64,000 bases of DNA from Eutreptiella sp. 'Long Island Sound 2002' (GCA_964036045.1 OZ038378.1:28582001-28646000); one strand, 5' to 3'. Shown: positions 3,581 through 46,132, counted from the stretch's first letter. Notes: generated from the letters alone by a model not told the origin. Numbers and translations are program-made.

Positions 3581-6500
3581 AAACGTCGTTTTGTATCCTA
3601 GTCGGCATGTGATATTACAACATCCCCACTTCCCCCACTTCGAGTGGGTACCATGGGGTGGGTATGGTTGCCAAAAACACCATCACAGCAGAAACAACTA
3701 AAGGCCGCAAGAATTGCATTCGCACTCGTCCCACTCCGCTCCACAAAAACCCTATGGACTCATGACCCAAAAACACTTTTTCGTCTCAAAATCAAAAAAC
3801 TAAAATATACATGAATTTTGACCCCCCCTAAAGGGGGGTCATTTTCTTCGACTTTTTGATCCCACCCTTCATACCCCTCCCTCACAGGGGCAAAAAAGTG
3901 AGTATGGGGGCATCCGGACCAAAAAGTCATAGGGGGATGCATTTATAGGACAAAATGATGATATTACCACGGGTTAAACAAACGTTTTAACCCCTTGTAG
4001 TAGGGCACGCAACTACGCCCAAATAAGCCCGTAAAGGGGGGGTATGTGGCATTTTCCCCTATATCCAGGCCTGCTTGGCTTTGATCTAACAATCGCTGTG
4101 AGGTGATTTTCAAGTGTCACCAAGCAACCTACACAACATCAACTTTGGGCATTCGTCAATTAACGTCCACTGGTCTCTGTAGAGAGGTCGGGGAGCTAGG
4201 AGGTGGGACAGTTCGAGTTGAAGAGCCCGTGGCCTCCCATACAGGCGCCTATGCCTGCACTGTGGCTAGCAGGGACGAGCTGCTTGGGACTACGTCGCTT
4301 CCACGCCTAACTGGCGGCTCCTGGCCCTCTCTGCTCAGCACCACTAGCACCTCGGCAACCTTGCCCCAGTGGTGGGTTTGTGGGCCGATGTCACCCCGCA
4401 GTGCGCGTGCTTGCCCGGCCAAGGCCAGCTGTAGGCCGGGGCCCTCCAACGCGCCCACGGGCCCTGCCTGGGGTAGGTGTGCCAGTCCCTGATCTCCCAT
4501 CACCATGTGTCCCCTTGGGGCCGGCCACAAGCCGAGCACCCCCTGAAACACTTCCTTCTCCCCCGGTTGGGGCAGATGGAAGTTATGGTCTCCCCGGGTA
4601 CCCGCTGCAATGGGCGGCATCACCCCCACAATGCCACTGAGGGTGTGGCGTCGCCGCTGCCTTGGCGGCGGGGGGAGGGAGTGGTTGTGGTCCCCCTCCT
4701 CCGAAATGAGCACCCCAAAGGGCGGGCGCAAAACCTGGGCCAGTGCTTGGCCGGTGGTCACCACGGGATGGGGGAGGGGGTGATTAGGATCCCCCGCCCC
4801 CCATTTGAGCACCGCGGGGTCAACGGCTGTTGGGGCCGTCTGTCCGCCCTCCATCCTCCAGACGCACCTTGGGCTGGCGGCTTTTATAGCCGGCATGGTC
4901 CCTCCTTTCCCACAATTAGTGGACCGGGGCATTGGCCCCCGCATCCATGACAGTATCACGCCACTGCACCCCCTCCCTTGCCCTAGTGGTCGCCCGCAGG
5001 GGGACAGGGTCAGGACATGGGAAGAGAGAGATAGGGGGCCCCCTAGTGGGCTTGGGGGCTAGGTTAGCAAAAGGATGGCGACAGGCACAACCCCCCCTTC
5101 CGTGATCCCGCTAGCAGCAGCTCAAATGTAGGATGTGTCGTACCCCACAATGCAGCAATACATTCCTCCTCCTGCACCAGCTGTTGGAGCATCTAGTCAT
5201 CCCCGATCCGGCTAGCGGCTAAGATAGCCGGCTGAGCCAGGGAGTAGTCGGAACTCACCTTGGGTTGTAGTCCTAGCCCACTCTTGGGGAAGGGGGGGGG
5301 GCTTTCGGGATCGTAGCCCCCCCCCCCCCGCCTGAGAGACAAGCTCTTGCGCCGCTGGCGTTGCTGCTGAAGACTCCACGACCACAGCCTCCATGTCCGC
5401 AAGGTCTTGTGCCGCAGACTGCGCTGCTGCAGACCCCACGTCTGCAGTCTCCATGTCTACTGTGCTCTTGTGCTGCAGACATCGTTGTTGTGGGCCCCAA
5501 GTCTGCAAAATCGTTGGAGCCAGAGGTCCGAGGGCAGAGGGAAGTGCCTACTCCACCGCTGGCCGTCTCGATGGCACCTGCACCCTGTGGTCGGCCGTGC
5601 AGGCCGCGCATGGTGCCTAGAGCGCCGGGGGGCATCCCCACTCCAGCACCGGGCAGTTCCAGACCAAGCAATGCGCGAGGCTCGTCAGCCCACCTGCCCG
5701 TGGGACCCCACAGACCAAGTGGGTCCGCCCCCTCGGCCAGCCTTGAGGCATTGTGCCCCCTAGCGGCGCCTTGCAAGGCTGCGGTTGTAGAGACACCCTC
5801 CACGCGAGGCGGCACCCTATCCCCAAGGCCAGCCCGGGAGCGATCGCCAGCATGCCGCCAGCGTCAGCCACGGCTGACAGCGGTCGGCGTCCTGTCGTGG
5901 GACCGCATGACCCCCACAGGGCTAGAGACGCTGGACGCCAGAGAGCTGCCTCTGCCCGCGCTTCCGAGTGCCGTGCCAAATTTGTGGGACTCGGTGGGGC
6001 TGCACGTGTATGACGTTCCCCGATTTGGATGAGTCAGCCAGTGTGGCCGTAGCAGCGGTGGTACTGGCTCCATAGCTGCGGTCCTTCTAGGTGTTGCCCA
6101 CGGCGTCCTGCCCACACTGGGGGCATACCTGAGCATTCTCCGTTAGCCCCCTGCACCAGGGGCACAAGTTGTTGCCGCTCTCATGGGGCGGGACGCCGCC
6201 AACAAGGCCGTTGCTGCTGCCGCAGCGGCACACGCGGCCGCGACGGGGCCAATCTCAACATCAGCCCCTGTTTACGGATGGCTCTGACCGGTTGCCTCGT
6301 TGTTGCGCGCGCTGGCTCTGGCGCACGGGCAGGACCGCCACTCTCGGTCCCGCCGGCGGTGGGAGAGGGGGCCAGTGCCTATCGGATAAGCCCCGGGGAG
6401 CCCCCAGCAACACAGACATGGTGATTGCGGCTTGGCTGGAGCAGCCTCGCCACGTGTAGGCGCGCAAGAAGAGGCCTACACAACAGCAATTTGGGGCTTT

Positions 6501-16089: not shown

Positions 16090-16640
16090 CAAAAAGAGAA
16101 TGCGGCATTGCTTGCCGCCGATTGCTCCGAGGGCTCATTGTTTGACGCCCCGCAGCCACAACTCGAAGGCCTCGGGATCCTCCTCCATCCAGGCCTCCGG
16201 TCCATCGGCAGGCTCATGATGCTAGCATTCCACTCGGGCTGGGCTGCCAATGGGGAATGTGCGCGGCATGCCGCACACCACATCACCCCGTTCTCATACT
16301 TTAGCCAAGGGCGCCCTTGTTGCCATGAAGCGTGGAATGTACGAATTTTGGTTGAGGGAGGGCAAGGCGGGCATGTGGGTTGAGCACACTAGAGACACAA
16401 ACCTTCAAGTGTGCATTCAACATGCACATAGCATTTGTAGTGCTTGCATTGTTGGGTATCAGTGTTGCCCAAAGGCTTTTCACAACCTCTACAGGCACAC
16501 GCAAAACACCAGCGGTGCCCCTCACCCCCCACCGTGACAAAGCAATGCTCATGGACACCCCGCTTGCATTGCGTGCATGAGTTCGTCAACCCACATAGTT
16601 TGCTGTGGCAACTACTGCAATGCGACAAACCCAAAACTTT
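16090..16640 (-). pseudogene. Tandem PHD-like fingers plus a TTF-type zinc finger, in frame downstream of the transposase fragment
   Basis: CSSC-x10-CTQC-x4-HEHC-x11-CFAC (C4HC3), a second degenerate finger ending GLCL*C (one stop at 16389), then KIRTFHASWQQGRPWLKYENGVMWCAACRAH. Confidence 0.6.
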
Positions 16641-16649
16641 GACAAAGCT

Positions 16650-17214
16650 CCCGGGGGCCAAGGGGCAAATCCATAGAATGTTGCCCAAAATATCAACGGC
16701 AACAGTCACCTTGTAAACATGCGACGCATACGTAGGATTCCACAGGTCTGCACTCCATATCCCACCAATGGAACTGATGGGCATGGAGTCTGTGAAATGC
16801 GTCATAAAGAATGGAAAATGGGGACAATGGTTGAAAGGATTCAATTTGTCGGCCCACCGAATCTCTTGAACAACATGGTTAAAGTATTCACGAACACGGG
16901 GAACACTCTGCCGCCAGGCAACCTCCGAACATTTTCCGTGTGAGACATGAAAGCACCGCTCTCTGCCCGTGGGGTGTGTTGCATCCAGAAAAAAAAAGAA
17001 ACAACGACTCATGGTCGAGGAGCTCATGGTGTCCGTACTTCATCCAAAATTCCTCCAATGTTTCTGCATCCGCACCCATCCGTGCAACCTGCGTACGCAC
17101 AAAGGTGGACTTACACCGTTTCACCCACCATTGGACACCACCACCCTTGCCATCGTCATAGACGGGGTGCAAAGGGTGTGCCAGATTCTTAGACACGGCG
17201 AGAAGATACTCCAA
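16650..17214 (-). pseudogene. PIF/Harbinger-ISL2EU-type (DDE_Tnp_4-like) transposase remnant, N-terminal half of the catalytic domain
   Basis: FTDSMPI...LWNPTYASHVYKVTVAVDILGNILWICPLAPG matches the D...K-x-x-H..K..AV...G.I.W...PG pattern of IS5/Harbinger transposases. Frameshifted upstream, and cut off before the second Asp. Confidence 0.7.
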
Positions 17215-18377: not shown

Positions 18378-18610
18378 GGGGGCGTTTTCACACAGCGCGG
18401 GCACAGCACCAATTATTACGTTGTTTATCCCAAGAACACCCCTGAAAACCACCCCCCTACAGAAGCGTGCATGATCCATTCAAAACAGCATCGGGATGCA
18501 GAATTCAGGACCCTGGGACCCGTGGCTACCGGTGGTGAAAAACAGCCGACTCTTCGCACAGCGCGGGCACAGCGCGGGCACAGCACGCGCACAGCACACG
18601 GTGCGCCCCC
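18378..18610. mobile_element. 233-bp MITE, an empty derivative of the 34667-35653 element family
   Basis: CTT|GGGGGCG ... CGCCCCC|CTT. The first ~110 bp and the right end (CTACCGGTGGTG...TTCGCACAGCGC) align by eye with the two ends of 34667-35653. Confidence 0.8.
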
Positions 18611-20486: not shown

Positions 20487-21530
20487 TCAGGACAGTATCT
20501 TTTTCCGGAAATATCGCTGTTGGTACAAAAATTCAGCATGTCCCACAGGCGACCAAGCATAGCAGAACTCCATAATGTACATCAATAGGTCCCATGGCAG
20601 TCGTACCAGTGGGTGAGAGGCCAGTGCGACAGGTGCTGAAGGGGCTAGCCCTCGTGTGCGCAGTAATACAAACACCCTTCGCTCTTGCCACAGGCAGTCC
20701 CTCCGATGCCTCTCGGCAATGGCCTGCAGCGACTCAATGCTTAAGCTAAAGTTTCTGGCATACAGAAAAAGCCAACAAACCTCCCGCACGCTTCCGGGAG
20801 CTAGAGGCTCCAGACCCTGGACAACATTCCACATCCCTGATAGCAGTGCATGACGAACACATATGTCAACCGAAATAAAGTGTCCCTTACCAGACACCCC
20901 GTCACTGTCCGAATCATCGCTAGGTATCAAGGCATAATCGACCAGCTCATCGAATGCTTGATGGCGTAGAAGCTTAAGAACGAGCTCTTCGCTTTGGGAC
21001 ATGATGGCAGCTTCCAGCACCTTGAGCGAGCAGTTACTGCGCAACGCCCCCCAATGTGGCACAATGTCTAGCAAGTGGCAGCAAAGCTGTGCGTTGCCGG
21101 ATCTGGCAGCCAGCACGATGGCGCCTTCTCCAAAAATGTTGCAGTGGGACCAACGAAACACTGCTGAGGATCTTTTGGTGCCGTGCGCAAGCAGGCAGTC
21201 AATAATGGCTGATGATGCTCCATGCTTGCAAGCATACAGCAGCACATGGCAGCGGTCGGAATTACGCGTGGCTAGGGACGCCCTGAATGACAACAGACAC
21301 CCAATCATAGCCGGTGCGACCGATGTGTCACTGGTGCTTGCAAGCATCAGCGGGGTGATGTGGTCTGGAGAGAACCTTGCATTTGCCAAACGGGGTTGAG
21401 AGGCAAGTAGGCTCTGCACTTGTCTCAGTTGCCCAAGGGCAATACTGTGGGCGAACTCATCGCATAGCCATGAGGGAAGGGGAGGAGGCCAGGTGCAATG
21501 TCGGTGATGGCGACGGCCGCAAGGTGCCAT
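20487..21530 (-). CDS. Intronless ankyrin-repeat protein with C-terminal F-box-like motif (about 347 aa)
   Basis: About 4 ankyrin repeats (ITPLMLAS, HVLLYACKHG..IIDCLLAHG, GAIVLAARSGNAQLCCHLL) and C-terminal LVRLPWDLLMYIMEFC. First ATG at 21530, preceded by the acceptor CCTTCCCCTGCAGTTTTGCAG (AG ends at 21572). Confidence 0.8.
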   Translation of the reverse strand: MAPCGRRHHRHCTWPPPLPSWLCDEFAHSIALGQLRQVQSLLASQPRLANARFSPDHITPLMLASTSDTSVAPAMIGCLLSFRASLATRNSDRCHVLLYACKHGASSAIIDCLLAHGTKRSSAVFRWSHCNIFGEGAIVLAARSGNAQLCCHLLDIVPHWGALRSNCSLKVLEAAIMSQSEELVLKLLRHQAFDELVDYALIPSDDSDSDGVSGKGHFISVDICVRHALLSGMWNVVQGLEPLAPGSVREVCWLFLYARNFSLSIESLQAIAERHRRDCLWQERRVFVLLRTRGLAPSAPVALASHPLVRLPWDLLMYIMEFCYAWSPVGHAEFLYQQRYFRKKILS

Positions 21531-23129
21531 TGCAAAGAACAAACTCCAAGGGATGGCCAAGATACCAGAGTCTGCAAAACTGCAGGGGGAAGGCAGTCCA
21601 AAGCTTTGAATTACAAGCCAACAGATTTCATTTCTTGATGAAAAAGTGGTGTTGCCAAATTTGTTGGAAGCATCCCTTCGACCTCATGTTTTTTACACAT
21701 AGCATTCTAATTATTTTTTGATACAGAGAGAATGTTTGCCCGAAGTGTCACCTTCGGCGCATATGCCACGGCACTGCCCGCCCCCAAGTGGATATGCACA
21801 AACAAGGGTGCCTTACATCAAACATAATGCATGCACATCGTGGCTTGAAGGATTTGAAACGATCAATGCCTATTTCTGTCGTGGCGCCTCTTGTCGGCTT
21901 GCCCTCCAACAGCCACAGGATGGTGACGGGCAAACCTCCTCCTGAGCAGTGCTGTATGTGCTCACTACACAATCACCACTATCTGTAGTAGTTTTCAGCA
22001 CAAAGATTAAAGATGAAAGATTGTCACAAGCAGTCAATAATCCACTGTGCAGCTTGTGCTCTGTGCTTTGCCCTGTATCCATAGGCGGAGCTTCTGTGTA
22101 TCTGTCCCTTGTGAATGGTAATTCTGCCGTGAATATTAAATGGCTGTCAAATATTAAACCGACGTGAATATTAGTTTGGGGGGGGGGGGTTAGATCCCCT
22201 TCCCCCTCTCCCCCTACCAATTCATGCCACAAAATCTGTGCCACAACGTGCTGTAGAAAGGATGGATTTACAAGTCCAAAGCACAACTATGGGAGCCCAG
22301 TAAGCAACCACACGGTGTACTCGCGCTGTACTTGCATCCTTCTGCAAATGCGATCCTCAATTTTTGAGTGTTTAGTCATCCGCATAGACCAACCATCATC
22401 AGCCATGCTGTGTACAAAAGCTAAACGCACAACAGTGTCCATGTGCCCTGTGAAAGCCCCCATTGAATATTCACACCCCCACTTAATATTAACGGCACTT
22501 TAATTATCACATATGAATATCATTCTACCTGGGGGGGGGGGGGGTAGGCAGAAGGGTCCCCACCCCCTTCTGGCTGACAAGGGGTCTGTGCAACTGAATA
22601 CATCACTGCTCGGACCAAACTATCTAACCTCACTGACAGCCACTGACAGCGTTGCCATTTTCACAGGTACGAACCTGTCCATTGTGTGGCCTGAAGAACA
22701 AGCACTACTTTGAAGACACCGAATCCACAATATGTGCAACACTTTTTGACCAACGGCTCATTTAGAACACTCGGCCAGAAAATCAGCTCGGGCTGTCCCC
22801 TGGCACCGGACAAAGGGGGTTGTGCCTATGGTGGAAGGGATAGGGCAGCAAAATCAAGGGTTGCCCCTTGGCGCTGAGCGAGGGTGAGGGAGGGGGTGTG
22901 ACAGGTGGGGTGAGGAAGGGGCCTGAAAATGAACCAGGCTGTCCCCTGGCGCTGAGTGTGGGTTACAGCTGGTGATCCAAAGCTATCACCTGGCATAGTA
23001 GGGGGGAGGGAGGGCGCCTCGTTCATTGTTGAAAACGGGGGATATGGTATCCTTTGCTCAAGCGACCCCTGTGGAGTCCTTTGTTAGTAGAGAGCAAGTG
23101 AAGCGTCAAGGACACATATGCCACTTTTT

Positions 23130-34230: not shown

Positions 34231-34666
34231 AATGCCCCTCCGGGTAGCGCTGCGCCCAAGGTGGGGGGCAGCGGTCCCAACATGCCCCTCCTCCCCGTTG
34301 CGCACGCCCAGCCCAAGTGCAGAAACTGACAAATGCACGGGTTACTGCGCTCCCGCGCAGCAGTAACTCACCTCAGACACCAATCCAATACCTACTCCGC
34401 CCAATGAGCGTGCCAGTGCATCCAAATCCAAGGTCCCGCAGATGAGCATAAGAGGCGCCACGACGTCAAATACCCACCGTGGCGTGCCAGCAACTTGCAA
34501 AACTTTGGGATATAAATACATTTGACGTCAAGCCTCATGTGTTGTATACATGTGTCGCACCTTTGCTAGAGGCTGTTGTCGCCAACCCTCCAGCTGCGAA
34601 ACCTAAACCCAAAACGGCCTCCAAGTGATTGTCAATGACAACTCTCTTGAAATCGAAGTGATCTAA

Positions 34667-35653
34667 GGGGGCGTTTTCGCACAGCGCGCGCACAGCGCCA
34701 GTTATTACGGTGTTTACCCCGGTAACAGCCCTGAAAACCTGCCACCTCTAGAAGCATGCATGAGCAATTCAAAACTCCGAAATTCAAACGTGTCGTGTTC
34801 TCAGAATTATCCAATGTCCAAAACAATGCAACGTAGACAATAAAATTGTCTTGCGGGTGTTAAAGAACATATATTAGGGGCTACTCGGGAACATCAATCT
34901 CGCAAGTATGTTCACCCATGCAACCTCTACACAAGTAAAGGTCACACGTGGAGCATTCCGATGTGTCCCTTTTGTCACAAACTTGGCAAAGGAAAGTATC
35001 CTCCTCTTCCTCATCAACCTCAGGGGCCTCTTCCTCTGTCCAAATGGAAGAAGGAATGTGCTCCCATGGGCCATAAGGCTGATACCTTTTCTGTCTTCGC
35101 AACATGAATTGTGAAAAGTGCAGAAGTATGCGTGTGTTGGCATGCAAGTCTTGATGGGACCCCAGCCAAATGTCACGCACTACTCTCCAAGACCAAAGGT
35201 GGGCAAACAAGTGTTCCACCCGTGCACTAGGGATGGCAAAGGAGATGGACTCAACTTTGCACTGCCGATTCACCACCTTCACCGCGTCTTGGAAATACTC
35301 CAAGTGGACTAATCCGTCGGGCGCAAACCCCACCACTATGGCAGGAACTCGCACCCCATTGGAGCGAGTGTAGAACGCCCTGTCTCCAACATTAAAGTCC
35401 ATGGTGAATGCAATAGAGGGTCTGAGAAATGAGAGCAAAAGATGATGCCCCGCGGCAGACACCCTGAGAATGTATCACCATATACCTGCCTCAGGGTACC
35501 CGTTTGCAAGGGTACATACACGCAAGAAGGGGGAGGGTTGATGCTACAAGGATACACAATGGCAATAGTACCCTGCGGCAATCCTACACCCAAAAAACTG
35601 CCTACCGGTGGTGGAGAATGGCCTACTTTTCGCACAGCGCACGGTACGCCCCC
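34667..35653 (-). mobile_element. Complete 987-bp non-autonomous TIR element (PIF/Harbinger-like) carrying an intact ORF
   Basis: TAA|GGGGGCGT ... ACGCCCCC|TAA: perfect 8-bp TIR and 3-bp TAA TSD. GCACAGCGC subterminal motifs at both ends. Confidence 0.8.
34881..35402 (-). CDS. Transposon cargo protein: Tudor/SH3-like domain, acidic linker and B-box-like zinc finger (173 aa)
   Basis: MDFNVGDRAFYTRSNGVRVPAIVVG..., then EEEAPEVDEEEED and CQVC-x5-CSTC-x4-CRGC-x3-HTC. No internal stop. Acceptor TTTTGCTCTCATTTCTCAG lies 19 nt upstream of the ATG. Confidence 0.65.
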   Translation of the reverse strand: MDFNVGDRAFYTRSNGVRVPAIVVGFAPDGLVHLEYFQDAVKVVNRQCKVESISFAIPSARVEHLFAHLWSWRVVRDIWLGSHQDLHANTRILLHFSQFMLRRQKRYQPYGPWEHIPSSIWTEEEAPEVDEEEEDTFLCQVCDKRDTSECSTCDLYLCRGCMGEHTCEIDVPE

Positions 35654-36961
35654 TAATTCTGCATCATCAATGCTGTCAAAATGCAGCAATCTGATGCCAT
35701 TTAGAGGACACAAACCCCTCCCGCACCATGTGTTGCAAAAGCGGTGAACGGCTCCTTGACACTCAGGGCGGGTGGAGACCACGCCGCTGTTTGGAGGCTT
35801 GGGGCTAACGTATGTAGACAAGCCCGGGTGTACCATTCGCGCACTGCGCCGTTTCGTTCGCATGTGAATTCCTGTGAGTCTCACCCAACACCGCATGAAC
35901 ACCGTAGACATGTAGACCCACCAAAACAACACAACATCAACACAACACGACACAATGCCACGCAACACAACACCACAGCCACCACGACACTATGCAGGGC
36001 CACGTCACGTACAAAGGAAGACACTCGCAGATGTGACCAGAAATCGCGAAAAATTCTGTGAATTTCACCCAAAAATCACCCCAAATCGGTGGCCACAGTT
36101 CACGCACGCGGATACCATGAAAGGCGATTTACGAAGCGGACAAAGTGGGAGCCCGTTTCCATATGCATGCCCGGCATTGTATGCGAGACAAGAGGGCGCT
36201 CAAGAGGTGGCGCAAGGGACTACTCGCTGTGAGACGAGGATCAGGTGATGCTTTGCTTTGTTGGCCTAGCATGCAGGACCACCACCACCACCACCACCAA
36301 CAGCATCACCAGCAGCCCACCAGCACCGCACGACACCACCGCAAAAGTCACGAATGCGTCCCAGACGCTTCTGCATGTGTCTCGGGTCTCAGCATCACAC
36401 AGCCACAGGAATCCACCGATTCCGGTCTGTACGCTTTCTGGGTGCACTGGGCCCTGGAGCAGCCGGGCTTCTTGCATTCCCAATGCATGTGCGTGGCGCT
36501 GTGTGCCTTGTCTGAGCATGTGCCCAAGCACAATACCGCAGTGCCGCCGTCCCAAGAGACCCTGCGACGCAAGCCCAAAGCCGTCAGATGCGTGTCCGGA
36601 GCTGTCGCACGGCAAAGGGGCATGGGTGCCTGCGCGATTCGGCGCTGCATACAACGTCCCATGTGGCAGGCCCTCTGTCATATCCATTGCAGGCGGTGCC
36701 ACAATGCACCGCACCGTTGTTGCATTCGGGCACCCGCACATCATAAAATGTGTGTGTGGGGGGGGGGGGACTCCTGCTGCTCAGCCGTCTTACCCGGAGC
36801 CTGCGCGCACGAAGTCCCCAGCAGATGCCTGGAGCAGAACTGAAATAGAGGCAAATGCCGTGAGTCACTTCCCGCAACTGACCAATGACTGCCGTCGGTT
36901 GATCGCAACCACCGTCGCGAACCCACAAGAGGGTCGCGCGCACTCACGATGCCCGTGCCCC

Positions 36962-37342
36962 TCACTTCATCACGTTGGGAGTGGGGCCTTGCGGTGCGGG
37001 TTGCGCGCCCGGCTTCGGGATGTCGTTCCTGGACCCGAGGGACTGCAACACCGGGTCCGCAATCAAAAGGCAGGCCACACACAGCAGCACCGTCTGGGCG
37101 TTGGTAGCCAGCGCCCCGTGGTCCCGCAGCTTGCGGTGCAGCAGCTGCGCGTACGCCTGGACGCCACCTCCGGGGCTGGTGTCGGTCCCCCACGGGGCGC
37201 TGCGGAGCGTTTTCTGGCCCCAGAGCCCCAGCCGAATAGCGTACGTAGGGCCGAAAGGAAGTTCCTGTGCCGGCCCCGAGGGCGCCGCGGCGAAGGAGAA
37301 GTAGAACACGACGCGGTCGGGGGAGCCTGGGGCTGTATGAGC
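36962..37342 (-). CDS. PhyH-family dioxygenase, exon 3 (spliced product about 370 aa)
   Basis: Acceptor CCTCCCTCCCTCTCAG|GCT gives HRGQ-AHTAPGSPDRVVFYFSFA, the expected R-x-x-x-Y-F-S-F strand after HRG. TGA at 36962. The C-terminal tail could hide a further intron. Confidence 0.8.
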   Translation of the reverse strand, partial: AHTAPGSPDRVVFYFSFAAAPSGPAQELPFGPTYAIRLGLWGQKTLRSAPWGTDTSPGGGVQAYAQLLHRKLRDHGALATNAQTVLLCVACLLIADPVLQSLGSRNDIPKPGAQPAPQGPTPNVMK

Positions 37343-37674
37343 CTGAGAGGGAGGGAGGGAGGCAAAAGGCAGTGGCAGGGCTTGCCTGAGTGCGGCAACG
37401 AAGACCAGGTCTCTTCCCATTACTCTGCAGTCCAAAATTGGTACTACTCCCTTTCCGTGTGCCCGAAAGAAAACCGACAGCGCAAAGCAGTGGGCGCAAA
37501 AGATATGCCCTTTGATCATAGAATACCCTGAGACAACCGCCAACAGCCGTCAACTGGTCGTCGGTTGACCATCAACTGTCAACTGTCACCGGTGGGCAGT
37601 TGAAGGTGCGCGGGTGGGGATTGACTGCCAGCAGTTGGCAGTTGGAAGTCAGGCGGCGGTACGGGACTTTCCTT

Positions 37675-38452
37675 GGGGGCGTTGTCGCACGGTGCGCGCA
37701 CGGTGCGCGCACGGTGCGTGCACGGTGCGCGCACGGTCCAATGTTTTTGGGATGGTTGCCCAACTTGTACCCCGTTGAATGGCCCCCATAGAAACACACC
37801 CAGGGTCCTGATTTCTGCACCTTGCAGTCCATACTGGCATACCAGGATTCTTCAATTTTTAGTCTGATGCTTGTCACAGGTTCCAGGGTCCTATTTTCTG
37901 CACCCTGCAGCCCCTATTGGCGTACCGGGAATTTTTTTTGAATCTGATGCTTGTCACAGGTTCCAGGCTCCCAATTTCTGCACCTTGCACGCACCTCCGT
38001 AACAAACCATGCACAGGCGACAACACAGGCGACAACACTGGTTGGATTACGGGAATTTCAATTTCATCCGCCACAGAATCCACTTCAGGTAATTGGGGCT
38101 CCAGCAAAGCGTGCATCGGCGCCTCATGGTGCACAGGTTGGGGGGAATCGGGGCTCTCAGCAGTCACAATTGCAAACTCCAACCGCTCCTCGGGTGCATG
38201 CTCGTACAAGACCTCTTCACCACCCAATTCATACCAAATAGAGACGCGACGCCCACCTCTTGGAGAAGGGCCAATGACAGTGGCTGACACCCTATCCCCG
38301 TTGGAGCGGTGGTAGTACACAGGCAGTCCGGCGACAAGCCGGGGCAGCTCAGATTCAGGCATTGTGGATCTGGTAGACACAGAATACGCAAAAGGACGCA
38401 CGGTGCGTGCACGGTGCGCGCACGGTGCGCGCACGGTTCAGGCAACACCCCC
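37675..38452 (-). mobile_element. Complete 778-bp non-autonomous TIR element of the same family, in intron 2 of the PhyH gene
   Basis: CTT|GGGGGCGTTG ... CAACACCCCC|CTT with 3-bp TSD. Arrays of the 11-mer GCACGGTGCGC at about 37683-37733 and 38397-38436. Internal roughly 80-bp tandem repeat at about 37800-37990. Confidence 0.75.
37874..38362 (-). CDS. Transposon cargo ORF with the Tudor/SH3-like domain (162 aa; C-terminus runs into repeats and is probably truncated)
   Basis: VAGLPVYYHRSNGDRVSATVIGPS...VSIWYE...RLEFAI followed by an S/P/E-rich linker. Acceptor TTCTGTGTCTACCAG lies 7 nt before the ATG. Confidence 0.55.
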   Translation of the reverse strand: MPESELPRLVAGLPVYYHRSNGDRVSATVIGPSPRGGRRVSIWYELGGEEVLYEHAPEERLEFAIVTAESPDSPQPVHHEAPMHALLEPQLPEVDSVADEIEIPVIQPVLSPVLSPVHGLLRRCVQGAEIGSLEPVTSIRFKKNSRYANRGCRVQKIGPWNL

Positions 38453-38927
38453 CTTGAGTGAAAAGCCCCCCCCCAAAAAACTCCGGTGCCTTGAGGAGAA
38501 CTGAGGGGAGGGGGAGGGGGGAGGGGGGGGGGGGGGGGGCAACAAGATATATGTCAAGGTGGTATTTTTATGATGCGTTGGGCCCCAACAGCTTGTGTGA
38601 TGCGGCAGATGTACGACATCCCGCGATGCGTCGATGTACATTACATGTTCATATACACGCACACTGGTGTGCCGCATCCAGAGCCCTCAAGGATTAACAC
38701 CATCCATCCAGGGTACACTGTGCACCCGACCCCCGCGGTGCACAGTTTGTAGACACCGTGCACCCCGTTCCCGACTTGCAGCGCTGCACAGCCGCGTGCC
38801 TAATAGGCCTGAGCATGCAGTCGCACCCTCTGTACTTTTAACCCCCTGTATGCACCCTGTACCTACACACTCTGTACCGACACATCCGTACATGTCGGGA
38901 CATGTTAAGTGTAGGTGGAACGTCGTA

Positions 38928-39286
38928 CTCCCCCCCCTGGTATAAGCTACGGCAAAGCTGCAAATAAATACGGTCCCTACGCCTATTTTAGCTTGGACGA
39001 CGCCATAGACACCTAGGTTCAGAAAGAGAAGATTGCATGGTGAGCAAGTGCAAGAAAGTGGAATATAAGGCACAGATATCCCCAAAATCAGAGCTATGTG
39101 GGTTCGGGTGGGCAAACATCCACAACAAATGTGCCCATGACTCTATGTAGCTGGCAAATTTGGCACCCAACCCATGCCTTATGTGGCTGCACTACATTTG
39201 TACCAAATAAAATTAGGTACCAAATTAATACGGTCCCTGCACCCGCTGTAGCTTGGACAAGGGCGTGGCTTACACAAGGGGGGGGG
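38928..39286. mobile_element. 359-bp TA-flanked TIR element, an internal-deletion derivative of 45379-46132
   Basis: TA|CTCCCCCCCCTGGTATAAGCTACGGC ... GGCGTGGCTTACACAAG9|TA. Keeps the same leader and ATG region (MFAHPNPHSSD...TMQSSL in translation) but lacks the beta-barrel domain. Confidence 0.65.
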
Positions 39287-41603
39287 TACCCGACGCATTG
39301 AGCCCCAATGCCTTGTGTGACACCCCAACGCCTGGTGCGACACCCCGACGCATGGTACAATGCATTTCCGACGATACTCGGCAACAAGCAGCGCCAGAGA
39401 GGGAGGGGCAGTTGTGAAGGGGCACAGGGCAGAGGCAGAGACAGGCGGAGGCATGCACCGAGCGAGAGGGAGAGAGAGGGGGCAAGGGTTAAAGGGATGC
39501 GGGGAGGAGAGCCACAAGCCAGAGGGAGGGACAGGGCAGAGGGCAGAGGGCAGAGGGCCGGGGGCAGGAGGCAATTGTCGAGATTCACTGAGAGGGAGAG
39601 GGATAGATGAGAGAAGGGCCAATGGGCTTTGGGACCCCTCAGTGTTCCCCAGCCATACCCTCCACCCCTTGGGATACCCCAGGGATACGCTGCTGGCGTA
39701 TCCCTGGGCCCGGCGCCAGAGGGGCTACTGGGGACGTCCGGGGCCTGCTTTCCATCGGCGGAATCCCAGAGGAGGTCCGCCCCCCCAACCATCACACACA
39801 TACACGCACACACACACACACACACACACGATTGCAAGGCTAATGCGATGAAACGTTCCACCCTGGGTTTGCTCCATTGACCCTCGCCCTGGTGCAAGCA
39901 CTCGCTGTCTGGGCTCCGCGTCTAGTCACAACTGTCCGATCAGTCCATTGTCGCACACTCACTGTGCTACACTGATGTACCTTTGACGGTCTGGGTGGGT
40001 GGGTGGGTGGGGTCAGAGTGTTGTGATGGCAACACAGAGCGCAAAGCCCCCAAAAACAAAAAAGGACTGCATGGGGGCAGGTCACGCAGGTGGACAGTAC
40101 AGGTGGCTCAGGACACAACCGCGGGGCAAGGCTCGCTCACGCAAACCTGGTGTGGCGCCCCCCCCCCCCCCGCCATGACAGACTGCAGTTTGCTCCACTG
40201 ACCCTCACCCTGGCGCAAGCACTAGCTGTTTGGGCTCCACGTCTAGTCGTAAATGTTCGATCAGTCCATTGCAACACACGCACTGTGCTATATTGAAGTA
40301 CCTTTGACGGTCCGGGTGGGTGGGTGGGGTCAGAGTGCTGTGACGGCAACACAGAGCGCACAACCCCCAAAAACAAAAAAGGACTGCAAGGGGGTAGGTC
40401 ACACAGGTGGACAGGATAGGTGGCTCAGGACACAGCCGCGGGGCAAAGCTCGCTCACGCAAATCTGGTCTGGCAGCCCCCCCCCATGCCAGACTGCAGTT
40501 TGCTCCACTGACCCTCACCCTTGCGCAAGCACTAGGTGTTTGGGCTCCACGTCTAGTCGTAACTGTTCGATCAGTCCATCACAGCGCACTCACTGTGCAA
40601 AACGCCGGCACGCGGATGTGTGCCCCCCTTCACTGTCGGCAGCGTGCGCGTCCCTCTGGAGGACGCGCCCCGCAACTCCCCGCACCCCACCCGTGGACCT
40701 CGAGGAATAGACACTGGCGTTGTCAAGGACGCTCTGGGATGTCCCACAGCAGACGGAAAAGGGTACTGCTAGGCGAGGACTCTGCCCACCCTGCGGCCTG
40801 CAGGCTCGCTACGAAAGAAAAGAAAGGAGCACAATCAACACCTAACTAAACATACATGGCAAAACAAAAAACATACAAGGGCGGGTCGGCGGCTGGCAGG
40901 TGGCCTCATCGCAGCAGGGGCCAAGGGAAGGCTAGCATCGGGCTCAGTCGTGGCGTGTTGCAGAACTGGAGCCACTTGACAAGCATGCACCCGCTGTAGC
41001 TTGGACAAGGGCGTGGCTTACACAAGGGGGGGGGGTACCCGACGCATTGAGCCCCGATGCCTTGTGTGACACCCCAACGCCTGGTGCGACACCCCGACGC
41101 ATGGTACAATGCATTTCCGACGATACTCGGCAACAAGCAGCGCCAGAGAGGGAGGGGCAGTTGTGAAGGGGCACAGGGCAGAGGCAGAGACCGGCGGAGG
41201 CATGCACCGAGCGAGAGGGAGAGAGAGGGGGCAAGGGTTAAAGGGATGCGGGGAGGAGAGCCACAGGCCAGAGGGAGGGACAGGGCAGAGGGCAGAGGGC
41301 AGAGGGCCGGGGGCAGGAGGCAATTGTCGAGATTCACTGAGAGGGAGAGGGATAGATGAGAGAAGGGCCAATGGGCTTTGGGACCCCTCAGTGTTCCCCA
41401 GCCATACCCTCCACCCCTTGAGGGAGGGTACGCTGCTGGCGTATCCCTGGGCCCGGCGCCAGAGGGGCTACTGGGGACGTCCGGGGCCTGCTTTCCATCG
41501 GCGGAATCCCAGAGGAGGTCCGCCCCTCCCCAACCATCACACACATACACACACACACACGATTGCTACGGAGGGCCAATGCGATGAAACCTTCCACCCT
41601 GGG
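39237..41603. repeat. Direct duplication of about 620 bp (39237-39865 and 40986-41603) bracketing the 315-bp tandem
   Basis: Near-identical sequence from TGCACCCGCTGTAGC to ACCCTGGGT, including (AGAGGGC)3 and a (CA)n tract. Confidence 0.9.
39871..40597. repeat. Roughly 315-bp tandem repeat, about 2.3 copies
   Basis: GCTCCA(T/C)TGACCCTC at about 39871, 40192 and 40502. Confidence 0.85.
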
Positions 41604-42411
41604 TCTGGATGGCTGGGGGGGTGCAGGGTTTGAGGTTGATGCCAACGACGCTGGCTGGCAGACCTGCTGCACCTCATTGAGCAGACCAGACGCTAGCCCT
41701 GGGTGCTAGCCACAAGCTACATGGCCTTGATGCCCAAGGAGGCGTGCGCGCACACACACACACACACTCAAGAGGAGGATGGCCTCCCTAACGTAGACCC
41801 ACATGTGGACCCAGGGTAGGGGAACGGGATGGGCATCGCCAGAGGCAGCCCCATCTTGATCATGTGTCGCGTATCATTTTGAACTCTCCACCGCCGCTCT
41901 TGCGTACCATACCATACCTTGGCAAGGGCCTGCAATGAGGTCCGGTGGCAAATTCGCTGCCATAACGGCTGATCTGGCTCCCCATACACGCCCGAGAGTA
42001 CCGACTGTAGCGTTGTGCCCTGCTCAATGTGTAGATGTCTTGAGTACATCCCCCCCTCCATGCAATGCCACGGGACGGGATGGGTGTGTGTTGAGGTTGG
42101 GCGTCTGAAAAAACGGCAGCAGAAACAAATTAATCCCCCACAACAACATATGCCTCAAAGTGACCAGCACAACACATTTGATCAATATGAGGTGCACATG
42201 GTTGGGGTGGAAAAATGTTCCTTCCGGGGCCGTTGGCACCGATTTTCGAGCCAACACACATCCATCCTGCCCCCCCCCCCCCCCACCTCCCGCATCTGTA
42301 AAAGGGCTCGCTCCCGTAAAGGGCTGGGATGGGATGCCCCTCCTCCCCCCATAATAAGATGAAGGCTCCCCAGAGGCACAGGCAGGGGCAGAGGTGATGC
42401 TGCCCACAGAC

Positions 42412-42693
42412 CTGGCCACGGTGCAGCGTCGTGGACTGCATCAGGACGGCAGAGCCGGCGGCTGCAGTCACTTGCAGGCCCTTCTTCTTCGCGACACAGG
42501 GCTGCTTCACGGTGCACGTGTGGGTGCCTGGGCAGACCTCCAGTGGGCCCATCCCCGCGTCCGTGTCCTGCAGCGGGACAAACACCGTGATCAGCTGCGT
42601 GGCGCCCGGTGTCAGGATCGAGTCTGGGTGCCACTGCTGCTTCTCGGCCCCAGGGGCCACAGAGATGCTTGCCAGCTCCACCAGCAGGGCATG
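42412..42693 (-). CDS. PhyH-family dioxygenase, exon 2 (catalytic core)
   Basis: Acceptor CTGCTCTGCAG|CAT. Contains QQWHPD (HxD), VFVPLQD, GPLEVCPGTH and GSAVLM..TLHRG (distal His). Donor CAG|GTCTGT at 42411. Confidence 0.9.
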
Positions 42694-43281
42694 CTGCAGA
42701 GCAGAGCAGACGGGCGTGACAGTCGCAGCCCCACCTCCTGCAAGCGAGGCTGTCTGAATGCTTCACGCATTGGTCATCAGTGGCACTGGCAGCACCACAC
42801 GTGCCCCCCTAATCAATGTCAAAATTACTGGGGGGACCTAAGCGCCGGGTGGTTGAAGGGGCTCCCACTTGTTTAGTACCACACGCTGCAACATACATTC
42901 ACGTCTCCGTCCTCCGGAGCCACCCTCATCTTTTGTCCATGTATTTGAGGTTGCATGAGGGGGGGGATTGAGACAGTTTCGGGACTTTATGGCGGCGGAA
43001 GGCATTCCGGCACGGCATTGACTTGTGGTGTGTTCGAAAACGGCTGAAATTCCGCACTGCCCGTGCACGGCGCACGCAGCGCTTCTATGCTCTCCACCAC
43101 TGATGATGTGGGGATTGTAACACAGGGACGGGGTTCCAGGTCACCAAGTGTTGTGGTTGCTGTCGTTGGGGGGGGTGCCGCAAGTGGCTTTGAGTACGAA
43201 AAATGGACAGACGTAGCAAGAAGCGGCAGACAAATTCAGGGGCAACGGCACACGACAGCGCATGGCCACAGAGGGGCAGAC

Positions 43282-43731
43282 CGGGCCAAGCAGCTCCTCC
43301 AGAGGCTTCTGCAGCACCCGCACCAAGTGCACGAGCGGCTGCTCCACTTCATCGACGGCGAAGACCGTGTGGTTACGGTTTGCAGGTTCATTGATGGTGC
43401 AAGAGTCCAGCCACCGCTGCAGAGGGGATCGTGCGCCCCTGGCCCCCTGCCGTTCACGCAGCGCCCTCCGCAGGGACGCAGCCATGTCCCGAGGCAGGGC
43501 CCCCTCCACCACCGCCACCCCATGGTCCCGCATGCTCTGCACAACGCGCCGTGTGCCTGGGCCCAGGGCCTCTTCCTCCTCCTCCTCCACAGTGGGCGTG
43601 TAGGTCACAGTGTTGAGGTCAGGGAGGGGGCGCTCGGGGCACGCAACTTCGAGGACTGCAGGCGGCTGGAGAAGCGAGTACAGGGCCAAGACACACAGGC
43701 CCAGCACCGGTAGCAGGACCGTGCGAGACAT
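43282..43731 (-). CDS. PhyH-family 2OG-Fe(II) dioxygenase with N-terminal signal/anchor, exon 1 of 3
   Basis: ATG at 43731, downstream of a pyrimidine-AG (TCTGCTTCTTTTAG). Hydrophobic N-terminus VLLPVLGLCVLALYSLL, then the PhyH-like start DHGVAVVEGALP and EELLGP. Donor CCG|GTCTGC at 43281. Confidence 0.8.
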
Positions 43732-44829
43732 TACAGTGCGCTGCTGCGGAAACGGCACGGGAACGCTGCAATCTAAAAGAAGCAGAGCGGTAGTGCAAGC
43801 ACCTCTATGCATGCGTTCACCTTTGAGGTGATCTGTTGCCACAGTAGCACCAAACCGCCCCCTTGGAACAATCCCCCCAGAACGCCCGACAGTGTCCAGC
43901 GGGAACTGTCACCAAAATAACAACGCCCCCGCCAACACACACCCGGGGGAGGTAGGGGGAATATGCGCTGGGACGCAAACCTGACCTTTCCACCACAATT
44001 CCATTGTAACTCGAGGAAAATTGGTCTTTGGCGCCGGGAACTTTTGGGGCAAGAGACGGTGTCCGTCCCCCTCCACCAAGGGGGGGGGGGGGGGGGCTGT
44101 GCAAGACTGTTCAAGGGGGCGTCAGGGTACACAGAGTATGATCAACAGACCACTCAAATTCATAGGTGCATCCACCTGTACAAAAAGCAGAGAATGCTGT
44201 AACGGAATTTCTCAGCGATAGGCACACAATCAACGGGAAGTCCACGAAAGTTGACTTTGCTAAATTTTCTGATTGTTCTTAAGTCCCCCTGATTTTGCCC
44301 AATGTTCACCAGGGCATTGCACACTCAGCATCACTTTTCACACTGCATACTGAGCATTGCTGTAGGGCTCCCAGGCCCGATAGCCACTGATTGTGCGGCG
44401 GCCAGGCCCACCCACCACTTTCCTTGTCCAGCCTTGTCTAAGCACACAATCCCTGCCTGATCGTTCTGTTCCCTGACCTTGGCCCTGCTTGCAGCGGGGA
44501 GAGACTTCACCCTACAGCAGGCGTGAACAGTGTCACGGTACACCGGTGGCATGGCATTGTTGGCCTGTTTGCACCTGTGTGAGCACTTGGGCTTCCTGTA
44601 TCAGTGGTGCATGCCATGCAGTGCGGAAATTGCCGTTGTCCCAGCTACACAAGGCTAGGGACCATATGGTGTTGGCAGTTGGCTGCAGCCTGGGCAGCAC
44701 ATCAAGTGCAGCAGAGCAGTGGAAATGCCCAGAACTGCAACCTGTGTGATGTAAAGGGGGCAAAGAGCTGTACGTAAAAAAGCTGTCAGGGAAGGGTTTG
44801 CACCGTTAAACATATAACTCGTGTACAAA

Positions 44830-45300
44830 AAAATTATCTGTGTGTATAATGTTTTTTTGTGGCAAGGTTGCGTAATGTTTTTTCCACTAAAGTCGGGTTG
44901 TTTTCTTTTTGCAGTGTAATGTCATGTAATGTAAGACGTGTAATGTCAACCAAAATTCGGAGCACTTCAAAAAAAAATTGTCGGTGCACATAATTTGTTT
45001 TGTGGTAAGGTTCTGTAATTTTTTTCGTGCTGCAAAGCCGAGAAATTTTTTTCCAGAATAATGCCTCTTTTGCAATATGTACAATTGCTGGTTCGGTACG
45101 GCACCCCATAGCGACCTTAACGATGGGACTCTGAGTCCACAAAGCACAAAGTACTCTGTGTGGCCACCAATTCATTGGGACTTGGCCAATATAAGAATAT
45201 GGAGGTCTGACGGAGGAAAACGTGGAGGTAGGACACGACCATCTGTGGTGGAGTAACACAAACCTGCAAGCTACCAAAGAGAAATAGGTTGCTTACACAC
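44830..45300 (-). mobile_element. 3' end fragment of the Ulp1-element family, copy 4
   Basis: GCAATATGTACAATTGC(T/C)GGTTCGGTACGGCAC...GAGTCCACAAAGCAC aligns with about 13925-14010 and 28455-28535. Confidence 0.6.
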
Positions 45301-45357
45301 TACACCAGAAAGGGGCAGCTTACACGGCCACAAGCAGTGGCGCATAAAAAAGCATGT

Positions 45358-45879
45358 TTATAGACACCACCTTTGGTACCCCCCCCCTTTGTAATAGCTA
45401 CGCCAAAGTATGGAATTAATATGGTCCCTACGCCTATTGTAGCTATTACAAAGGCGTAGCTTGCACACGACACATACAACTACCGACATACACGTGAGAG
45501 AATGCATGGTATGAGTGCACCTTAACCTCCGCCCATGTTCCCAAAGGCATACAAACACAAGAAAGTGTTTGAGACATGTGGTGTGCCTTGGCTTGGGACA
45601 TGGTTGGGCCACCACCTCTGGTTCATGAAGAACTTCAGGAACGGGGGAAGGTGGCGACGGTGACCTTGGCTCCGGGGATGGGGACGGTGATCGGATAAAG
45701 AACTCGATTTTTGAAAAGGGGGCACAGGGGTGTGTGACCACCTGCCCACCCTTCATGTACTCCAACACCGCAAACAGGTCCCCCTTCTCCGATGGCCCCT
45801 TCATTGTGGCATCCACACGCTCACCGGTGGAACGTGTGAAAATCACTGGACGCCCACGTTGAAAAAGAGAAGATTGCAT
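45358..45879 (-). CDS. Transposon cargo ORF with the Tudor/SH3-like domain and an SP-rich linker (true 3' end uncertain; the frame reads through the TIR)
   Basis: MQSSLFQRGRPVIFTRSTGERVDATMKGPS...AVLEY...KIEFFIRSPSPSPEP. Acceptor CCCCCTTTCTTGCACCAG lies 6 nt before the ATG. Confidence 0.55.
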   Translation of the reverse strand: MQSSLFQRGRPVIFTRSTGERVDATMKGPSEKGDLFAVLEYMKGGQVVTHPCAPFSKIEFFIRSPSPSPEPRSPSPPSPVPEVLHEPEVVAQPCPKPRHTTCLKHFLVFVCLWEHGRRLRCTHTMHSLTCMSVVVCVVCKLRLCNSYNRRRDHINSILWRSYYKGGGYQRWCL

Positions 45880-46132
45880 GGTGAGCTGGTGCAAGAAAGG
45901 GGGATATAGTACACAAATATCCGCCAAATCAGAGCTATGTGGGTTCAAGTGGGCAAACACTCACAACAAATGTGTCCATGACCCTATGTAGCTGGCAAAT
46001 TTGTCACCAAACCCATGTGTTATGCGGCTGCACTACATTTGTACCGAATTAAAATTAGGTACCAAATTAATACGGTCCCTACGCCTACTATAGCTATTAC
46101 AAGGGCGTAGCTATTACAAGGGGGGGGGGGGG
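45379..46132 (-). mobile_element. 754-bp TIR element with TA TSD (Tc1/mariner/pogo-like, non-autonomous) carrying the Tudor/SH3-like ORF
   Basis: TA|C9-TTTGTAATAGCTACGCC ... GGCGTAGCTATTACAA-G13|TA. Confidence 0.7.

Follow-up and report, generated by a model that had tools for sequence, protein, structure and literature searches.

In a 64,000-nucleotide stretch of DNA from Eutreptiella sp. 'Long Island Sound 2002' (GCA_964036045.1, OZ038378.1:28582001-28646000; hereafter the window), three open reading frames (ORFs) on the minus strand, at positions 34881-35402, 37874-38362 and 45358-45879, have an N-terminal domain of about 60 amino acids in common, and each of them lies in a short transposable element, referred to here as c1, c2 and c3, respectively. 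The window is eukaryotic-looking in composition, with about 50-60% GC, and its scans gave no match to tRNA genes or Rfam families. An initial annotation of this DNA had described the three ORFs as a candidate new system, and both tblastn within the window and a profile search agree with the presence of the common domain. Within the window, the domains of c2 and c3 are 42.6% identical over 54 amino acids (E 1e-9), those of c1 and c2 match with an E-value of 3e-5 and those of c1 and c3 with an E-value of 0.014; no fourth copy of the domain was found by tblastn within the window.

A profile made from the three domains matched 337 of the 1.84 billion cluster representatives searched at E<=1e-3, and 98 at E<=1e-10. 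All of the matches are short proteins of 54-384 amino acids, and nearly all of those checked originate from the ENA assembly ERZ25074135, the contigs of which reach 4 Mb. One match, P0133, is a Euglena gracilis transcript (EukProt EP00667 Euglena_gracilis, EG_transcript_15555), and a few others are located on short contigs from other ENA, JGI or Logan samples. One such 1-kb contig (ENA ERZ27246226) holds L011, a pogo-like copy with the domain, and the family is therefore not limited to a single large assembly. The likeness of the three ORFs could in principle be due to chance or low complexity, with no protein behind it, and every pairwise match within the window is indeed short. This explanation, to which we attach a negligible probability, is already refuted by the 98 representatives at E<=1e-10, by the confident five-strand model obtained from a 65-sequence alignment and by the ratios of nonsynonymous to synonymous substitution rates (omega) of less than 1 between subfamilies, and it is also at odds with the finding of the domain in the Euglena gracilis transcript.

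Membership of the domain in any known sequence family is not supported. When the three ORFs were compared with Pfam, no family matched the domain, and a comparison of 65 members of the family with Pfam gave nothing significant, the weak matches to SH3_12 (Xrn1 SH3-like) being limited to 6 of the 65 sequences, with a best E-value of 0.0013. Searches of the PDB with the 3- and 65-sequence profiles returned chance-level matches only (e.g. proteasome alpha and ParD), and metagenome scans with P0133 and P0135, the protein of L011, found no relatives. In the literature searched, we found no report linking Euglena with Harbinger transposons, none of Harbinger or pogo transposases with a Tudor-like domain, and no account of the present domain.

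Three short elements of two transposon groups

Element c1 (34667..35653, minus strand, 987 bp) was delimited by blastn against the locus L006 (4238-6235) and by inspection of its flanks. It is bounded by GGGGGCGT...ACGCCCCC and contains direct subterminal repeats of 11 bp, and the target site duplication (TSD) TAA is present at 34664-34666 and 35654-35656. The N-terminal domain of c1 (35226..35402, minus strand), which is Tudor/SH3-like as detailed below, represents codons 1-59 of the upstream gene of the parent, with 93% protein identity to the upstream ORF of L006. The remainder of the ORF (34881..35225, minus strand) was recognised by tblastn and Pfam as a fused tail that comprises the last ~110 residues of a DDE_Tnp_4 domain, a B-box-like Cys/His finger with weak Pfam B-box/C1 matches, and the stop codon. 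This tail matches the transposases P0178, P0201 and P0223, all from ENA assembly ERZ25074135, with tblastn E-values of 1e-25 to 4e-28.

The relationship of c1 to a larger element is apparent at L006, where a 2.0-kb element (4238-6235, TSD TGA) encodes the closest transposase, P0288 (334 amino acids, 13 cluster members), which scores 30.9 bits for DDE_Tnp_4 against a Pfam cutoff of 24.8. Compared with this element, c1 lacks 967 bp (L006 4690-5656), while both arms are 95.5-95.7% identical in blastn. In the c1 ORF, the upstream gene is thus fused in frame, after its codon 59, to the tail of the transposase, and c1 is demonstrably a deletion derivative of a larger Harbinger element. The junction between domain and transposase differs among c1, P0171, P0023, P0086 (24.9 bits for DDE_Tnp_4, with the same cutoff of 24.8), P0048 and P0307, which is the pattern that independent internal deletions produce. 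All six Harbinger-type copies inspected (c1, c2, L002, L003, L006 and L008) have GGGGGCGT ends, and 3-bp TSDs were found for five of them (TAA for c1, CTT for c2, TGA for L006, ATG for L003 and TTG for L008); inspection of the flanks of L002 revealed none.

Element c2 (37675..38452, minus strand) was assigned from its ends and flanks as a non-autonomous Harbinger-type element. Its ends are GGGGGCGTTG...CAACACCCCC (pattern GGGGG[CT]GTTG), its TSD is CTT, and its N-terminal domain, identified by tblastn and the profile search, spans 38159..38362 on the minus strand. The window repeat analysis detected a subterminal array of 11-bp repeats (CGCACGGTGCG) at 37686..37744 and a second array at 38397-38444, neither with a strand assignment. 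The same analysis, together with translation of the ORF, placed the 3' part of the c2 ORF in unstranded tandem repeats of ~80 bp (37800..37989), and this part reads as run-through into the repeats, as opposed to conserved coding sequence. The transposase part is missing from c2, which has the ends, the 11-bp arrays and the 3-bp TSD of the Harbinger type.

Element c3 (45379..46132, minus strand) is also non-autonomous and was recognised as an inverted repeat with TA flanks. Its terminal inverted repeats (TIRs), with poly-C/TTGTAATAGCTACGCC ends, are 26 nt long and 96% complementary, with TA on both sides. Thus, as had been annotated initially, each of the three ORFs lies in an element with TIRs and a TSD (TAA for c1, CTT for c2 and TA flanks for c3). 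The N-terminal domain of c3 (45688..45879, minus strand; tblastn within the window) is 46% identical to that of L011. Repeat families and flank inspection also revealed an ORF-less sibling with the same ends and TA flanks (38928..39286, minus strand), which lacks c3 positions 45460-45848 (codons ~11-140) and hence nearly the whole ORF. Of the four poly-C elements inspected, three (c3, L012 and the sibling of c3) have TA flanks. A 4-bp GTAC TSD of c3, or a GTAC inside its TIR, is disfavoured, as L012 has GTA on the left and TAA on the right, which favours TA.

We regard c3 as probably being a deleted pogo-like element, based on comparisons with longer relatives. The nearest subfamily to the c3 domain is one that occurs together with pogo-type parts. 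In P0133, the domain is followed by a psq-like stretch and by a match to HTH_Tnp_Tc5 of 18.6 bits, which is below the cutoff of 22.2 bits. In L011, the domain is followed by a linker rich in serine and proline (S/P linker), a Tc5-type helix-turn-helix (HTH) and the start of a DDE core (...NGDETQVSLEPV), and L011 matches residues 242-355 of P0133 with an E-value of 2e-28, with two stops. The 5' non-coding region of L011 has 35-49 nt (78-86%) in common with the subterminal DNA of c3 and of the c3-type copy L010. In addition, L012:6001-6786 contains a 261-amino acid ORF (P0165) that combines the domain and an S/P linker with a canonical WW domain (Pfam E 1.8e-8), and this ORF sits inside a 1.24-kb element whose TA-flanked TIR reads TA|poly-C-TTG... 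A 90%-identical copy is present on another contig. However, it should be noted that the link between c3 and the pogo-like elements consists of the 35-49-nt DNA match, the domain similarity and the TA flanks, and that the right-hand TA is missing from L010. Among the loci examined, there was no full-length element with c3 TIRs.

With their poly-C ends and TA flanks of 2 bp, c3, its sibling and L012 would also fit into a RAG1/Transib-like group, which has CCC ends, 2-bp TSDs and a Tudor-like module. We consider this assignment unlikely, since the Tudor-like module of such a group is C-terminal in a partner gene and the module described here is N-terminal, and since both the subterminal DNA of c3 and L010 and the domain of c3 match L011, which is pogo-like downstream of the domain (E 2e-28 to P0133).

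The right end of the ORF-less sibling is included in a segmental duplication of ~1.75 kb with 98-99% identity (window 39278-39577 and 41027-41326, with 39683-39786 and 41426-41529), and CA-microsatellites and tandem repeats of ~320 bp are located in between.

Longer copies and the proteins of the parent elements

The upstream ORF of L006, which starts at 4511, encodes the domain, an S/P-rich linker, a basic stretch and a Trp-rich region, and the transposase ORF starts at 5001. In other copies and subfamilies, the Trp-rich region is followed by a conserved stretch with the consensus FLPRWGIADxxDPxWxAWRRLFQ, whereas L006 instead jumps at 4987, via the microhomology CGATGGGGA, to a position just ahead of the transposase start. 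By this comparison, L006 is itself internally deleted at 4987. The upstream-ORF stop and the transposase ATG of L006 are 1 nt apart in the sequence TGAAATG (L006:4997-5003), and the transposase frame is open from 4953. Termination-reinitiation or a +1 frameshift at this site was considered and rejected, the junction having been made by the microhomology deletion. The L006-type derivative is represented by 13 near-identical transposase copies and, given this number, may still be active.

The proteins of L007, which belongs to the c1 subfamily, and of L009, which represents a subfamily with ~50% identity in the domain, run on beyond the domain. The middle regions of the two proteins share 35% identity over 170 amino acids (pairwise E 8e-33) and are followed by a low-complexity stretch and a conserved segment that ends in ...AHPL.PV (E 5e-8). 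In L009, the same frame enters the residues of the transposase start (...VRTQVARMG in L009 versus ...VLRKQIALMG in P0288). The intact Harbinger ancestor therefore probably encoded one long protein of roughly 850 amino acids by our estimate. The order of its parts would probably have been the domain, the S/P linker, a Trp-rich helical region, the middle region of ~170 amino acids, DDE_Tnp_4 and the B-box-like finger. For the Trp-rich region, no Pfam match was obtained, and its AlphaFold2 model, which was made from a shallow alignment, has four helices and a predicted local distance difference test (pLDDT) score of 77; its best fold match has a Z-score of 5.9, and the Myb-type ARR1 scores 4.6.

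Against a single long protein, L009 has a stop inside a PKPQ microsatellite and a frameshift at the transposase junction, and a fully intact parent was not recovered among the longer copies looked at, so that two adjacent ORFs or a spliced fusion instead of one ORF are possible. In L009:4660-4745, a stretch of ~80 nt with GT...AG ends breaks the Trp-rich region and is a candidate intron or insertion, for which no exact frame-keeping junction was found. The loci L004 and L005 have near-complete transposase ORFs with no domain upstream. Three loci (L001:7439-7959, L004:4161-4900 and L007:4640-5500) contain a satellite of ~170 bp, either as an insertion into the 5' part of the element or in place of that part, with the TIR on one side and the coding sequence on the other in every case.

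The subterminal repeats of 11 bp are particular to each Harbinger subfamily, with a common GCGCGC frame and a variable core (L004:3485-3520 and 6105-6129; L005:4631-4652 and 6257-6276; window 37686-37744). Depending on the subfamily, the core of the 11-mer is GCGCGCTGTGC, GCGCACGGTGC, GCGCGCCCGGC or GCGCGCAGTGC. It is plausible that these repeats are subfamily-specific binding sites, as yet predicted ones, for the DNA-binding domain of the element.

Altogether, we consider it very likely that the three ORFs are N-terminal remnants of transposon genes, carried by non-autonomous internal-deletion copies from two cut-and-paste groups. In c1 the domain is followed by a transposase tail, and in c2 and c3 by read-through into repeats and the TIR. 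The status of these elements as miniature inverted-repeat transposable element (MITE)-like derivatives is apparent from the comparisons of c1 with L006, and of c3 with its ORF-less sibling and L010, which have the same ends and lack internal coding sequence. With similarly high confidence, the domain, here termed the RS[NT]GxRVxA barrel, appears to head the long proteins of the transposons themselves in at least two superfamilies of euglenid elements. The domain is thus transposon-borne, as the initial annotation had claimed, and it occurs in two unrelated element types. On the other hand, that annotation had taken it to be a separate accessory protein that replaces the Myb/SANT protein of Harbinger elements, which is not supported, since the long protein of the element itself begins with the domain in the longer copies. 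Likewise, the idea of a new system did not survive the comparison of c1 with L006, relative to which c1 lacks 967 bp, the ORFs being by-products of deletion.

In intact elements, the barrel would be the first domain of a protein that serves the element's own transposition and, in pogo-like elements, it would precede the CENP-B/Tc5-type DNA-binding domains and the DDE core. The copies in the window would have been moved in trans, and the domain would have been retained in them solely owing to its position, a few hundred bases from the 5' end and adjacent to the TIR, subterminal repeats and probable acceptor for a spliced leader. If the deleted copies give rise to peptides, these would be inactive or, at the most, act as competitors.

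Candidate splice acceptors, selection and predicted fold of the domain

Most euglenid mRNAs receive a spliced leader. A pyrimidine-rich stretch with CAG was found ahead of all three ATGs, at 19 (c1), 7 (c2) and 6 (c3) nt upstream, so that the layout described in the initial annotation is present in each case. The candidate acceptors of c1 and c3 pass a strict definition that is met by 1.9% of the ATGs in the window, but that of c2 is weaker, with 68% pyrimidine, and falls narrowly outside this definition. In c1, the polypyrimidine tract and CAG (35422..35445, minus strand) form a candidate spliced-leader acceptor, identified in the sequence and kept in all six copies of the subfamily. It is plausible that this acceptor is located just upstream of the first codon of the parental element, in which case deleted copies would inherit it.

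The three domains were initially described as stop-free despite their divergence. This is true between the three subfamilies, but within its subfamily each copy is young: c1 shares 95.5% identity with L006, and the exact 162- and 186-amino acid ORF products of c2 belong to a 90% cluster with 15 members. An open stretch of 60 codons would therefore be anticipated even if the copy itself were not under selection. To assess selection within a subfamily, substitutions private to a single copy were counted in six copies of the c1 subfamily (c1, L002, L003, L006, L007 and L008). Such substitutions affect 4.2% of the coding columns versus 4.6% of the 5' untranslated region columns. After correction for one double hit and one junction artefact, they comprise ~13 nonsynonymous and 5-7 synonymous changes, as compared to a neutral expectation of 3.2:1 (binomial p-value of 0.29 for the raw counts). 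The private substitutions thus look neutral, and the individual copies show no sign of constraint, although this test involves one subfamily, six copies and ~20 substitutions. In contrast, the omega values between subfamilies are 0.14-0.57 (Nei-Gojobori, with saturated dS). Values below 1 indicate that purifying selection has acted on the domain in the lineages of active elements. As judged from these substitution patterns, this is what is expected of a transposase domain, and not of a gene that is kept in each short copy. The view that the domain is kept under selection while being mobilised therefore holds between the subfamilies, and not for the private substitutions of the c1 subfamily, which look neutral.

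These data also bear on the possibility that the domain is a free-standing accessory mini-gene, or cargo, that is expressed from the short elements for chromatin targeting or anti-silencing and selected on the short copies. In every subfamily, the ATG of the domain follows a pyrimidine-rich CAG, the domain is conserved between subfamilies, and the c2 family consists of many near-identical ORFs of 74-187 amino acids for which no longer parent was found. Nevertheless, we judge this possibility to be quite improbable, because c1 is a deletion of a larger element with an ORF fused to a transposase tail, the sequence after the domain varies by copy or enters repeats and the TIR, the private substitutions look neutral, the ORF-less sibling of c3 indicates that the ORF is dispensable in cis, and longer proteins with the domain run into transposase domains. 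Against the interpretation as deletion remnants, no longer relative or parent was found for c2; for the c2 family, a self-standing mini-gene is still conceivable.

The fold of the domain was modelled with AlphaFold2 on the 65-sequence alignment. The model has five strands, a short 3-10 turn ahead of the last strand and a mean pLDDT of 79.8. In an unbiased structural search (VIA), the top matches were the TDRD3 Tudor domain (Z-score 8.7; 59 residues, 2.0 Å), a PWWP domain (8.3) and the LBR Tudor domain (8.2), followed by PHF19 and MTF2 (both 7.9), and then by NusG KOW domains and the SH3-like region of Xrn1. The best match in Foldseek was the PHF1 Tudor domain, with an E-value of 0.024. As far as a predicted model allows, the assignment of the domain as a Tudor/SH3-like barrel of five strands is well supported, in agreement with the fold suggested in the initial annotation. 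Kinesin-13, which had been named there as a resemblance, was not compared directly; the 50 best matches from Foldseek or VIA include no kinesin.

Ligand binding by Tudor and SH3 domains takes place at the hairpin of strands 1 and 2. In the model, it is this hairpin that contains the R-S-[NT]-G motif, which is non-aromatic, and we therefore do not claim that the domain reads methyl marks. Two or three aromatic positions are conserved (F/Y in strand 1, the Y of LEY and the F in strand 5). It counts against the Tudor-like assignment that the fold match is moderate, with Z-scores of 8-9 being near the stated background of the tool for small barrels.

The two superfamilies have DNA-binding parts of their own, yet both have the same extra barrel and S/P linker, in one variant together with a WW domain, which makes an interaction with the host the most likely role. 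In particular, we tentatively suggest that the barrel may mediate such an interaction, for example by tethering to chromatin or to a nuclear factor, with a likelihood somewhat short of even. It weighs against this proposal that the tethering role is purely inferred and that no aromatic cage stands out among the conserved residues; non-specific nucleic-acid binding and multimerisation are the alternatives. A more far-reaching scenario would be that a euglenid-specific Tudor-like reader or tether has been exchanged between Harbinger, pogo-like and possibly other superfamilies as an adaptation to the host nucleus, and that hundreds of deleted copies behind predicted acceptors make competing small proteins that regulate transposition or silencing. 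This we regard as doubtful.

Comparison with known transposons

According to two reports, canonical Harbinger elements require ORF1 and the transposase (PMC2836001, PMC13668399). The Harbinger-type elements described here resemble PIF/Harbinger elements and Tourist-like MITEs in having DDE_Tnp_4, short TIRs and 3-bp TSDs. They also have an upstream coding part besides the catalytic core, and they give rise to abundant short non-autonomous derivatives with the ends of the larger element. However, the upstream part here opens with a Tudor/SH3-like barrel and is apparently continuous with the transposase instead of being a separate Myb-like gene, and the model of the Trp-rich region gave no convincing Myb/SANT match (Z-score 4.6 for ARR1). 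Other differences are that the transposase ends in a B-box-like zinc finger, that the TSDs are not limited to TWA (TAA, CTT, TGA, ATG and TTG), and that the 11-bp subterminal repeats are direct at both ends. In the case of the pogo/Tigger group (Tc1-mariner-pogo), the likeness consists of the TA flanks and of the CENP-B/Tc5-type HTH followed by a DDE core in P0133 and L011, and the differences are the extra N-terminal barrel and S/P linker ahead of the DNA-binding domains and the TIRs that begin with a long poly-C run.

The barrel itself has the same size and topology as the barrels of the Tudor or royal family (TDRD3, LBR, PHF1/PHF19/MTF2, PWWP and chromo-barrel) and the SH3-like region of Xrn1, with Z-scores of 8.7-7.9 and root-mean-square deviations of 1.7-2.9 Å over 51-61 residues. 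It differs from them in the absence of a significant profile match and in its conserved, non-aromatic R-S-[NT]-G surface motif. Chromoviruses (Ty3/Gypsy) have an integrase chromodomain that tethers integration to chromatin. By analogy, the barrel would be comparable in idea, as a small royal-family barrel on the recombinase of a mobile element with a plausible targeting role, but the class of element is another one, the chromodomain is C-terminal and the barrel N-terminal, and there is no sequence relation. The KP product of the P element is a truncated protein that retains its DNA-binding domain and has been proven to act as a repressor. Similarly, the internally deleted copies in our study still encode the N-terminal part of the element protein, but this remnant lacks a known DNA-binding part and is known from its sequence alone.

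Our findings therefore do not define a new system. They reflect the ordinary biology of deletion derivatives, and they bring to light a new variant of transposon architectures that are already known. The 'mini-genes' seen in short TIR elements in this genome are deletion remnants of transposase genes, and should not be annotated as a new family of host or cargo genes. Of moderate interest is the lineage-specific Tudor-like module common to two transposon superfamilies, the function of which we infer. The same uncatalogued barrel heading two unrelated superfamilies in one genome implies domain exchange and a common host interface and, if this interface is chromatin, it would provide a testable handle on the site choice of DNA transposons in a trans-splicing protist, for whose transposons we found no earlier description. 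The layout of the Harbinger elements is also unusual, with the upstream protein apparently fused to the transposase and with a B-box tail.

Some further features were observed next to the Harbinger-type copies. L002 adjoins the end of a predicted protein of 1681 amino acids (L002:1-1238) with an ADP-ribosyltransferase (ART) and several SH3-like matches (SH3_15 and faint others). Elsewhere in the window, positions 16599-17100 on the minus strand encode the N-terminal ~137 residues of a Harbinger-type transposase that is 79% identical to P0178. A pair of GGGGGCGT/ACGCCCCC ends is located at window positions 18378 and 21044-21051, 2.7 kb apart, and, judging from these ends, it probably delimits another Harbinger-type element. 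The sequence at ~18378-18584 matches the arms of L006 with 84% identity, and an ankyrin-repeat ORF (20487-21560) overlaps the right end of this candidate element.

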